DNA from: Salisapilia sapeloensis CBS 127946
Taxonomy: Eukaryota > Protista > Oomycota
DNA: 64,000 bases
Assembly (NCBI GenBank): GCA_023334545.1
Contig: JAADVB010000059.1
Span: forward strand, 19,524 to 83,523
Reading direction: 5' to 3'
Shown one piece after another: positions 25,119 to 29,957 of this stretch. The notes below the pieces were generated by a model that was not told the DNA's origin, did not search any database, and saw only the letters and a list, made by a program, of their open reading frames with translations. Every line of letters begins with the position of its first letter. Within the stretch, counting starts at the first letter, position 1. A program made the translations under genes and the position numbers.

Positions 25119-26280
25119 TGGTGCCTCGTTCTGCTCGAAGAGGCTGAGATGTGTAAATGAATCGTTGACGCGAGAGAGAAGGAGAGATGGGCACCTTCGA
25201 AAAGTCCTTGGGACAGAAACGAGGCTTTGGCTGCTTTGTACTCTCATCAACACGAGATATTTGCTTTCGTGATCAGATGCAAGTGTTTTCCATACGTCTA
25301 GATGAATCTGACTCAGCGCGATGGAGGCAGCGAAAGTCGATTTTCAAAATAAAACGCGGGCGTGGAAGTGGGGTTTAAATAGAAGAATGTCGTTGGAGAC
25401 CATCACTGATATGAAAGCATCTCCTCGACAGAAAGGAGGCTGCTGTAGAGTTGACCTGAGCAGGGTCTTCGTTCGACATATGATTCGTCGGCGGATGTGT
25501 GGGCCAGCACCAGCTCGTGCGGATGTGTAGCCGTTTGCAACTTGATTCGTCGTCAACACTGCAACTTTCCGCTTGGGAATGAACGCCCTATGCGACCCTC
25601 CTTTTTAATCTAATCCTGTAGACGAAGTTTCCTGTCAAGTTAAAACTTGGTGCATGGGATGGAAACTGAATGTAGAGGCTATGTCCGAGCATGACAGGTC
25701 GTTGACTGTTAGATTCTTCAGTGAAGTGTTCATTTTGTTGTAGAGATATCACGTGCTATGCACTGTATACTAGAATGGCGTGTCAAGGAAATTGTGGAGC
25801 AGACAGGCTGGTGCGAGCAGCAATCAACCCGTTCAAGACGGTATACGAATGTACACCGCCTCGAACCCCCTGACGCATCCCGTGGCAACGTGGACGATAG
25901 TTCAAACTGCTGTCAATGTGAAACCTATCGATGAGTAGGGAACACATCCATACGCCGAAATGCTCTATCAGTCCGTATTTCTCTCTGTAGGGACTTGGCA
26001 AGACCCCAATTCCTTGAACCGCAGACATGTCATCTCGGAACTTGCAAGGTCATCGTCTCATGTCAAGTATTCCAATTGATTGGCATAAATAGTAAATTAC
26101 GTCTCGCCATTCGTGGAAAACATACAGTCGCACAAAGTATGCACGTTCTAAATACCTTCGTTATTTATAACACCAAAACGGAAATAAAACGAGAACAACT
26201 TCGCACGGAAGGACGATAAAGTGCCTTCACTTGCGACTGCATTGGCGCTCTTTTCAGCAGTCTAAGCACTCGTCACGCAC

Positions 26281-27508
26281 ATGTCCAGCACCATGAACCG
26301 CAACGTCCGGCCAGAGAATGTCGAGTTCACCGTCAAAGTACGTACGGCTCTATAAATGACCTGTACGCCATCTCATGTAAAACGAATAGGCTGAGGAAGA
26401 CCTCGTGCTCACAGGGCAGCAGCGGTCAATCGTACGTGTGCCAGCGAACAACATGTACTCTTGTCTGATGCAAAAAACACAACGCTTTTCCTCTCTCTTT
26501 CGGCACTACAGCAAGCACCACGGTCTCCCTCGTGAGTCCCTCGACTTTTTCTTTACGGTACACACCCACCTTTTTCCTCTTTTGACTTCTTCTCATGTCG
26601 CTTCATAGGATCGACTCGATGCAGAAGACTCTCCTGACTCTGTACACTTACAAAAGGTACGACTCAACTACATGTACCCACTAACACCGGAAGCTTAATT
26701 CACTCGTAGAACGACATTATCACTGTCCGTCGACGTACCTGCACTTCCGCCATGACGATGCCAGCGATTACAGACGATGACTACTTTACTGCTATGCGGC
26801 AACTTTATTTCGTACGTCCTGTATGTGCACTCAAAACCTCTACCAAGTGGTAAGCAATCGAATAGAGTGAAGAAGGAAGCGATGTAGTCTTGGAAGTCGG
26901 CCCGGAGAAAAAGGTTCTACGTGCCCATCGCCTCATTCTTTGCAGTCGTAGCGAAATCTTTCGTGCGATGCTCAAGCCAGGAAGTATGCGCGAAAGCGAG
27001 GATGGTGTCATTCGCATGGAAGACTGTAGTCCAGACATGGTGTCCAAGATGCTCGAATACATTTACTCGAACCGTGTCGCGGACATTGAAGATCTTACTT
27101 CCATCGTACGTCTCCTACTTGCTAGCTACCGGATCGTATAAACTAACTTGTCTGCTGTAGCAATTGGTGGATCTCTTGACATTAGCCGATCAGTACTTAC
27201 TTCCAGCGCTGAAGCAACTATGTGAGGCTGCAGCAATGAAAGCTGTTGGCATTGGCAACGTTGGTCGCTTCTTGTCTGCAGCAGAGAACTTCCGGGCGAT
27301 GTTTTTGAAAGACTATTGTATCACCTACGTCATGGAGCACTTGCAGGAGCTTATTGACGATGAAAACTTTAAAATGGAAGTGGAAGAGTGTCCGTCCATG
27401 GCGCTGACGATCCTTCGTGCATCGACCAAGTCATCCACAATATCCGTCGAGCCTCCAGTCTCGAAGAGGAGACGGCTGAATATGCCGTTTGATGACGACA
27501 CATACTAG
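26281..27508 (+). CDS. SUMO-like domain + BTB/POZ + BACK-like protein, 320 aa; exons 26281-26337, 26390-26557, 26609-26656, 26710-26811, 26866-27105, 27161-27508
   Basis: Five canonical phase-0 GT-AG introns give one open frame. SUMO-like FSSLFRHYSKHHGLPRESLDFFFT|DRLDAEDSPDSVHLQK|NDIITV; BTB SDVVLEV...AHRLILCSRSEIFRAML; LLTLADQYLLPALKQLCE. Confidence 0.85.
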
Positions 27509-27611
27509 CTCTTGTCGTCGACTAGCCTATTTAAATCCTACGTTTCCTTTGCACGCTGTACTTTAACGTCGCAGTACACAATCAATGCAGTTTGCTTCTC
27601 AAAAAAGAATT

Positions 27612-29957
27612 TTAGTCTTCATGTGATTCAAATGCAAAGCTACCAAACTCGTCATTCCAGTCTCGATACAAGGCCAAGTCTTTCGACGATACGCTCGGTC
27701 GGACCTAGCTAACCATAAGACATGAGAAACAATATATAAAAGAGAAGACATACACTTCGAAGTGCAGAGTGGAAGTCGGGGAGTTCAATTGGTCGGACAG
27801 AATCTGCATCCATTGTGCGAATATCTGTGACGCTACGGATCGGACCCATGGCTGCTTCCGTGCACAGAGATCTCACGTCTGCTCCAGAGTAACCTACCAA
27901 CTATACATCAGTGTCGTCCGTGTAATTGGAGATAGAGGAATATACCCTTGGTTTTATCTGCAATGGATTTGATGTCATCTTCGGATAAGTTGTGCTTGTT
28001 GTTCTTAAGCAGTCGAGCCGTGAGCTCCAGTCGAGGCTCGAGCGATGGTAGTGGGATGTACAGCCGTTTGACGAATCGTCGTCGAGCTGCTTCATCTAGT
28101 TCCTGAGGACGGTTCGTCGCGCCGACTACAAGGACAACGTCCGATGCTTTCGTACCAGCTCCATCCAACTGAACGAGGAACTCGGTCTTGATCCGTCGAC
28201 TCGCCTCATTATCTTCCGAACTGCGTTGCGTCAAAAGCGAATCGATTTCGTCAATGAAGATCACGGAAGGCTGCTTGACAGACGCTACGGCGAACAACGT
28301 ACGCACGAGTTTCTCTCCTTCTCCAATCCACTTACTTGTCAAGGAACTCGCGGAGATACTAAAGAACGTCGCACCAGACTGGTTTGCTATCGCCTTCCCG
28401 ATCAGGGTTTTACCTGTTCCCGGTGGACCGAAGAGAAGAAGTCCTTTTGGCAGGGCACGTAAACCAGTGAAGATGTCTGGTCGAGCCATGGGCCAAATGA
28501 CGAGCTCATTGACACATTTCTTTGCGAATGACAGTCCGGCAATGTCGTCGAAGGACACTGGGTCGCTGTTATCGACGATCTCCATCTCGATTTTACTTAC
28601 CAGCTCTGGATCACAAGATTTTAATCGAGGATCGACGTCTTCTGCTGATGGATCAGTGTCTTCTTTCGTCTTTGATCGACTGGATGACTTTGTTGACTTA
28701 GATCCACCTACAGGAGACACAAACTTTCTTGATACGGCAGATGTGTCGAGATTGTACGCATCGGTAGGGTCATCATCATCAGAATGGCTTGGACCGAGTA
28801 AGACGTTGGCGTTTACAGGGTGATAGACCCCACGTTTTGGTTGTCCCATACTATTCCGCCGATTGGACTTCTTTGGTTCATCCTTTTCATCTTCATACCG
28901 ACCATTCCGTCGATCCGTCTGATGTATAATATGTAAGTGGAAGGTGAAAGAGTGCATATACTAGTTGTAGTACCTGTAGCTGCTGTCCAGCTGTACGAAA
29001 AGGGTTTCCTTGTCCACGGTCGTTGCGATCATGTGCCGGTGTCGGATTCATACTTCGTCTAGGAGCCTTATGGACAGGCATTTCCTCGTCGTCCGAGTCT
29101 GTTCGAGGTGTCTTCTTTCGTAGTAAAGAGGCAAGAGAAGTTGGGTTGGACGCGACCGCATTTTCATCTTGTGCTGGACGTGATCGAGCAGGTTCTTCGC
29201 TCATACGAACGTGCTCATAAGGTTCGTTCTGCTTACTAGCTTGAATAGAGTGTGCCGTTACTTCCGTTGCAATTCCTGCTAAAGGATGTGTAGGTTTGGC
29301 TGTAGATGTCGAGCTAGATGATGGAAGCGGCTCGGAGGGTGGCTCTTTCGCAGTTAAAAAGTTAAATGGGAAAAAGGAAAAGGATAGTGGCTCGGGAACT
29401 TCTTCTGAAGCAGAGGTAACTTCGTCCGCTTGCTCTTGACTGTTTGTATGCTACGCACAACGTTTAACACTATTATCATACATAGTCATCCTCATACTGA
29501 TATACCGGTTGTGATGCCGATGACGCAGTTATTTCTTCCTGTATACGATCAAGCGTGGCAACAGGTGCTCCCGACCATCGATGCCGATTCTTTTCACGAA
29601 GTTTACGTCGTCTTGCTAAGAGTTGCTCATCTAAACTTGACCCCGCGCTATCACGTTGCCTCTGTAGCTGCACTATAATATTCATTCCACAAGTAAGCAA
29701 GCAAATAAACCTAGATCAAATATATAAAGCAACACACTAGTCCCTCTACAACTCCACTATCTACTGTATCAATGCAAATGCTTTCACGTACCGTAGTTGG
29801 CGGTATGTCGGCGACGCAACAGCTTTGCTGTCCCTGTTTCAGGTGTCCCAAGACAGATTGCAGCATCCAAGTGGTTGATCAAGTCCCACTCTGTGTCCAT
29901 ATCAATGTCATCGTCTTTCATGCGCTTAGCATAAGCATCTTCATGTGCATGCGCCAT
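27612..29957 (-). CDS. FIGNL1: Fidgetin-like 1 AAA+ ATPase; multi-exon, 5' exons approximate
   Basis: [63 protein letters not shown], spliced GYSGAD and final exon [22 protein letters not shown]. Confidence 0.88.

Follow-up and report, generated by a model that had tools for sequence, protein, structure and literature searches.

The window (the whole stretch of DNA analyzed here, 64,000 nt) carries on its plus strand, at positions 26281-27508, a gene of six exons. Joining the exons on the window letters gives a spliced coding sequence of 963 nt, corresponding to a protein of 320 aa in which a SUMO-like domain (exons 1-4) precedes a BTB-BACK module (exons 5-6). Introns 1 to 5 are 52, 51, 53, 54 and 55 nt long, and each is in phase 0 and has the form GTAC...TAG. 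Position 26281 is the first ATG downstream of an in-frame stop; the second Met, at residue 5, is the start in most orthologs. The gene is made up as follows:

26137-26280, plus strand: 5´ untranslated region, by the start of the longest contig
26281-26337, plus strand: exon 1 (19 aa), N-terminal tail and SUMO β1 (VEFTVK)
26390-26557, plus strand: exon 2 (56 aa), inserted hairpin, β2, α1 and β3 of the SUMO-like domain
26609-26656, plus strand: exon 3 (16 aa), loop of the SUMO-like domain
26710-26811, plus strand: exon 4 (34 aa), β5 (NDIITVRRR) without di-Gly, linker and first BTB helix
26866-27105, plus strand: exon 5 (80 aa), BTB core
27161-27508, plus strand: exon 6 (115 aa and stop), end of the BTB domain, 3-box/BACK and tail

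A different intron within exon 2, 80 nt long and running from GTACGT at 26432 to AG at 26511, was considered and rejected; removing it would cause a frameshift leading to a stop, and none of the contigs described below uses it. A short upstream ATG at ~26145, within an ORF at 25995-26219, lies inside the 5´ untranslated region of the longest contig and is a possible uORF.

The gene is spliced and expressed as RNA

Three public runs from one study of organism A, possibly the source strain (X1, X2 and X3), each gave one contig that is 100% identical to the window and from which all five introns are removed at the exact positions. The joint between exon 1 and exon 2 (26337/26390), at which 52 nt with GT..AG ends are skipped, is found in X1-X3 as well as in X5 (organism B, ~94% identical), whose contigs have introns 1, 3 and 4 spliced out. 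Since the contigs skip GT..AG introns, X1-X3 represent RNA, though the run records are silent on that point. The X1, X2 and X3 contigs start at 26137, 26179 and 26188, that is, 93-144 nt 5´ of the ATG. As they begin upstream of the ATG and carry every exon, the transcripts are not BTB-only, and the refuting condition of this kind that an earlier reading of the locus (hereafter the sequence-only reading) had named does not hold. Where that reading wrote of four small exons and five junctions, the layout is more exactly exons 1-4 for the SUMO-like domain and exons 5-6 for BTB-BACK. The gene is real, spliced and expressed as RNA. Of the five differences from organism B in exon 2, four are synonymous, on which basis purifying selection appears to act on this exon in the close relative.

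One X5 contig has intron 1 spliced out and intron 2 (26558-26608) kept. This contig probably represents a splicing intermediate and not an isoform, because the kept intron has a TAG in frame at its end. On the minus strand, a convergent neighboring gene (27509-28957) adjoins the 3´ end. Judged by motifs alone, its ORF at 27908-28957 resembles a katanin/fidgetin-type AAA ATPase, and its 49-nt intron (27703-27751) is spliced in the same X1-X3 contigs. The X1-X3 contigs pass from one gene into its neighbor, which means that the genes overlap or meet at their 3´ ends.

A predicted SUMO-type fold at the N-terminus

Domain scans of the window protein were run by exon piece and local comparisons were made on the spliced model, while the fold models were those of an ortholog, P0160. 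This protein and the window protein share 80% identity across residues 1-121, and 70% across the full length, and the P0160 model should serve as a fair proxy. Exon 2 alone matched the Pfam Rad60-SLD domain with E 0.067 (13.5 bits, profile positions 5-46 of 72), and a feature search of the same exon gave weak (0.82) ubiquitin/Rad60-SLD leads only, which were taken as a lead. Among 10 orthologs scanned, five matched Rad60-SLD (PF11976) at 16.6-23.4 bits, all below the cut-off of 23.8 bits, and the other five had no match at E 0.01; the Pfam SLD model misses the family by a few bits.

Clearer assignments came from a profile of 40 N-terminal domains (A1), against which the window protein scores 179 bits. 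The profile matched 166 PDB sequences, and the best 60 of the 166 were all SUMO/Smt3 chains or SUMO-tagged proteins, with E values of 1e-6 to 1e-5 for single-domain SUMO/Smt3 and coverage from β2 to β5. The AF2 model of P0160 residues 1-121 has a pLDDT of 88.8. When this model was used in a Foldseek search, the best 50 matches were all SUMO (TM 0.88-0.92), and VIA-align placed it on SUMO1 with Z 13.8 and an rmsd of 0.8 Å, covering 74 of 75 SUMO1 residues with model residues 7-96. On the strength of these models, the N-terminal domain is predicted to have a SUMO-type β-grasp fold. Two segments of this domain recur below:

26393-26443, plus strand: β-hairpin EEDLVLTGQQRSIVRVP, 16-17 residues in the β1-β2 turn, with extra strands 20-23 and 28-32 in the P0160 model
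26453-26527, plus strand: β2-α1 segment MYSCLMQKTQRFSSLFRHYSKHHGL, aligned to SUMO2 and equivalent to the SIM groove of SUMO

In the hairpin insert, E, L, G and R are invariant in the 40 sequences.

A metacaspase identity for exon 2 was also considered. With the single exon 2 sequence, phmmer against the PDB matched only yeast metacaspase-1 (E 0.009), around the catalytic His, with the pattern LTxxQxxxVRVP...SLFxHYSxHxG. We judged this match to be chance and rejected it, because the best 60 matches of the family profile are to SUMO/Smt3 or SUMO-tagged proteins and the predicted fold is that of SUMO at 0.8 Å.

After β5 there is no di-Gly; instead RRRTCTSAM follows and then the BTB domain, and GG is found at this place in no family member. 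Since there is no GG after β5 and the chain continues into the BTB domain, the SUMO-like domain is not conjugatable and is no modifier. The linker has a pLDDT of 67-71 in the AF2 models of P0160, and the full-length P0160 model has a pLDDT of 86.2 with a pTM of 0.59. Low confidence in the linker and a low pTM despite the high overall pLDDT suggest that the SUMO-like domain is tethered, as is MATH in SPOP.

The C-terminal two thirds resemble the BTB-BACK part of SPOP

Exon 5 matched Pfam BTB with E 2e-16 (60.6 bits), and its best PDB sequence matches were SPOP chains. Exon 6 alone scored 27.0 bits (E 4.9e-6) against Pfam BACK_BPM_SPOP (PF24570), for which the cut-off is 27.4, and PF24570 is precomputed as present in many orthologs. 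The PDB sequence matches of exon 6 were SPOP chains only and are collinear with SPOP 272-367; the alignment runs up to a common PP (GPP367 in SPOP), which is followed by a basic tail, here KRRRL. Two short motifs stand out in this part:

26986-26994, plus strand: M-R-E, aligned with M-E-E of SPOP (S-M-R-E-S in the window, E-M-E-E-S in SPOP)
27464-27475, plus strand: KRRR, a candidate nuclear localization signal after the PP, just beyond the last residues aligned to SPOP

We take M-x-E in SPOP to be the phi-x-E motif that contacts CUL3, as seen in SPOP-CUL3 structures. The Glu of this motif is nearly invariant in a family alignment (A2), and the K and last R of KRRR are ~90% conserved in the family. 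Where SPOP has Tyr353 in its BACK interface, the window protein has a hydrophobic residue, the Leu in TILRAS. With the full-length P0160 model, the best solved match in Foldseek was the BTB-BACK part of SPOP (4j8z; TM 0.85, rmsd 2.1 Å, 28% identity).

No MATH domain was found by Pfam on any exon piece or in any scanned ortholog, and the SUMO-like domain occupies the position that MATH has in SPOP. The window protein is SPOP-like in its ligase-binding half only; it is not a SPOP ortholog, because it is without MATH and has an N-terminus with a SUMO fold. These results agree with much of the sequence-only reading. The SUMO-type β-grasp N-terminus that it proposed was recovered by the A1 profile, AF2, Foldseek and VIA-align, all of which point to SUMO, and its assignment of an SPOP-type BTB/BACK part is upheld by the aligned phi-x-E, by SPOP as the best PDB match and by the collinear basic motif at the C-terminus. 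The replacement of MATH by a SUMO-like domain, which it also put forward, fits the lack of a MATH match and the location of the domain, and the SUMO-like pattern, the absent di-Gly, the BACK motif LLTLADQYLLPALKQLCE and PPVSKRRRL are each present as it described them.

The architecture is conserved across stramenopiles

A phmmer search with exon 6 against 1.84 billion representatives returned many proteins of ~300-400 aa in which the N-terminus is likewise shared, and the SUMO-like domain was present in 216 of the 343 cluster representatives that were fetched. Oomycete orthologs were found in Globisporangium, Pythium, Phytophthora, Peronospora, Bremia, Lagenidium, Albugo, Saprolegnia, Achlya, Thraustotheca and Aphanomyces, covering all oomycete orders. 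Others came from diatoms, chrysophytes, pelagophyte(-like) and raphidophyte transcriptomes, Triparma and Chrysoparadoxa. The combination of a SUMO fold with BTB-BACK is therefore conserved across stramenopiles, in oomycetes and ochrophyte algae; it is not a chance arrangement, because the same protein is present in 216 clusters of other organisms. A subfamily marked by YPCQMQKNQ is chrysophyte (Chromulina, Ochromonas).

Two members deserve mention. P0067, a protein of 498 aa from a Corethron transcriptome, has two tandem SUMO-like domains (residues 20-117 and 163-280) ahead of the BTB domain and is a natural "di-SUMO-like" variant. P0069, from the transcriptome of the amoebozoan Pyxidicula operculata in EukProt, is a divergent member; it shares the architecture and, at 23.4 bits, has the top Rad60-SLD score. 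It has three close relatives only, and may reflect either a reach of the family beyond stramenopiles or a prey contaminant.

The names given to family members in public records are only "BTB domain-containing protein" and "speckle-type POZ protein", and their precomputed Pfam matches are to BTB, with or without BACK, only. Our literature searches for SLD together with BTB/POZ/CUL3 found no description of the SUMO-fold/BTB-BACK architecture.

Conservation of the putative interaction surfaces

Within the protein, conservation is highest in the SUMO-like domain, where the mean top-residue frequency is 0.74, compared with 0.58 for BTB and 0.49 for BACK. Conservation peaks in the β2-α1 segment (YSCLMxKTQRFSSLFRHYxKHHGL, ~0.85 per column). 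The residues C, M, F, L and Y that line the groove floor are nearly invariant (over 90%), each being present in 188-206 of the 216 members, and correspond to the positions of SUMO1 Phe36, Val38, Leu44, Leu47 and Tyr51. The basic rim is lost, the equivalents of SUMO1 Lys37, Lys39 and Lys46 being L/Q, L/Q and S/C across the 216 members. SUMO1 numbering was checked against a published account (PMC12687455). Because the rim lysines are replaced, though the hydrophobic floor is kept, the case for a classical SIM with acidic flanks as ligand is not clear; should a strand bind in the groove, its motif is probably of another kind. The earlier suggestion that the domain recruits SIM-bearing proteins is weakened by the changed rim.

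The recruitment of SUMO enzymes, also suggested by the sequence-only reading, is not supported either. Glu67, Tyr91 and the acidic stretch 83-86 of SUMO1 have been described as "signature hot spots" for E1, the back side of Ubc9 and SENPs (PMC12687455). The Glu67 equivalent is never acidic in the family (V in 151, T in 44 and M in 9 of 216 members) and is T in the window protein. At the Tyr91 equivalent the window protein has R, and the 216 members have R/E. The acidic stretch is represented by Q-K-N-D in the window protein and by Q-(R/P/K)-(G/N/Q)-D in the family, leaving a single Asp. With these hot spots gone, it is unlikely that the domain recruits SUMO enzymes.

Comparison with known systems

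SPOP and the plant BPM proteins, which are MATH-BTB-BACK CUL3 adaptors, share with the window protein a BTB domain and 3-box/BACK of the same subtype, the M-x-E motif and a collinear basic motif at the C-terminus. SPOP is also comparable in length (374 aa, against 320 aa here) and likewise carries its N-terminal domain on a flexible linker. The window protein differs from SPOP/BPM in having a SUMO-fold domain instead of MATH, and the BTB-BACK identity is only ~28%. Known receptors of BTB-BACK adaptors include MATH, Kelch and PHR, and UAF1 and Rad60/Esc2/NIP45 are known examples of proteins with an integral SUMO-like domain.

Like the window protein, Rad60, Esc2 and NIP45 (NFATC2IP), the RENi family, have a SUMO-fold domain without di-Gly within a larger protein, and there are weak Pfam Rad60-SLD matches in common. 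RENi proteins have N-terminal SIMs, their SLD2 binds the back of Ubc9, and they have a role with Smc5/6 and Ubc9. The SLDs of RENi proteins are two and C-terminal, whereas the domain here is single and N-terminal, with a tandem arrangement only in P0067; moreover, the Ubc9-contact residues are replaced, an extra β1-β2 hairpin is present, and BTB-BACK follows. In the fold search with the window family's domain, the Rad60/Esc2/NIP45 SLDs were less close than true SUMO. With one N-terminal SLD followed by BTB-BACK, and with the Ubc9-contact residues absent, the window protein falls outside the RENi family.

STUbLs (RNF4, Slx5-Slx8) also tie SUMO-type recognition to ubiquitination, but with the reverse polarity, as STUbLs carry SIMs that read SUMO on the substrate, whereas here a ligase subunit carries the SUMO fold. 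In Elongin B-Elongin C, too, a ubiquitin-fold module accompanies a BTB-fold cullin adaptor; unlike the window protein, however, this pair consists of two polypeptides and serves CUL2/CUL5, and Elongin B resembles ubiquitin, not SUMO, and does not act as a receptor for substrates. A precedent for the receptor logic comes from UAF1 (WDR48), whose integral SUMO-like domain binds a SIM-like loop of FANCI and so brings it to a ubiquitin-system enzyme, the USP1 deubiquitinase of the USP1-UAF1 complex (PMC12687455). UAF1 differs in that it has a WD40 propeller and assists a deubiquitinase as cofactor instead of serving as a cullin adaptor, and it has no sequence kinship with the window protein beyond the fold.

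Proposed function and alternatives

On balance, we favor the interpretation that the gene encodes a nuclear SPOP-type BTB-BACK Cullin-3 adaptor in which a flexibly tethered, non-conjugatable SUMO-fold domain has replaced the MATH receptor; the use of a SUMO fold as the receptor of a CUL3 adaptor is plausible. Such a protein would contact CUL3 with its BTB/3-box part, through the M-x-E surface that is kept, and would be directed to the nucleus by its KRRR tail. The SUMO-like domain would serve as a partner-binding module through its nearly invariant β2/α1 face, perhaps along with the invariant hairpin. It could capture a strongly conserved partner by β-strand addition and present that partner for ubiquitination, and it would probably make no use of the enzyme-binding (class II) face of SUMO.

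A different possibility, which we regard as unlikely, is that the domain is a SUMO mimic that brings classical SIM proteins or SUMO enzymes (Ubc9, as for SLD2 of Rad60/NIP45) to CUL3, in the manner of an "inverse STUbL". SUMO is the closest relative in both fold and sequence, the hydrophobic residues of the groove are kept, and the tandem domains of P0067 resemble a SUMO chain. Such mimicry is difficult to reconcile with a Glu67 equivalent that is never acidic, a Tyr91 equivalent that is R/E, a stretch 83-86 reduced to a single Asp and a groove rim from which the lysines are gone, and in the model a 16-residue hairpin lies at one end of the groove. The domain might alternatively act in cis, a ubiquitin-fold domain stabilizing or regulating the BTB-fold adaptor in the way of Elongin B, with substrates arriving via another subunit. 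Elongin BC offers a precedent for pairing a ubiquitin-like protein with a BTB-fold cullin adaptor, and the very high conservation would suit an obligate structural interface. A fixed interface, however, is at odds with a low-confidence linker and a full-length pTM of 0.59 in a model in which both domains are confident, no other candidate receptor domain exists in the protein, and the best 50 Foldseek matches are to SUMO and not to Elongin B, so that we hold this arrangement to be improbable.

BTB-BACK proteins also have CUL3-independent roles, and self-association through BTB/BACK could display the SUMO-like domains on a scaffold that acts in a nuclear body or in chromatin or transcription, with no ubiquitination. 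The BTB-BACK part resembles that of SPOP, which polymerizes through both domains (PDB entry titles refer to oligomers of full-length SPOP), and the residue at the SPOP Tyr353 position is hydrophobic here (Leu). Against this, the protein has kept M-x-E and the 3-box region, and we give a pure scaffold little credence. A CUL3 adaptor with a SUMO-fold receptor remains the reading that we prefer. We offer only tentatively, as a speculative extension of it, a stramenopile-wide "inverse STUbL". This would be a Cullin-3 ligase whose SUMO-mimic receptor, with a remodeled, more hydrophobic groove and an added β-arm, captures a specific strand motif of an ancient nuclear partner, and in which SPOP-like self-association through BTB/BACK yields a built-in poly-SUMO-like array.

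The stronger conservation of the SUMO-like domain than of the ligase-binding half, from oomycetes to diatoms, points to an old and constrained interaction. It would connect SUMO-type recognition with ubiquitination in a new way, in organisms among which are major primary producers as well as pathogens of plants and animals. A SUMO fold at the receptor end of a cullin adaptor is new against the literature searched. If the "inverse STUbL" were true, it would be a device for ubiquitin-SUMO cross-talk that is unknown in animals, fungi and plants.
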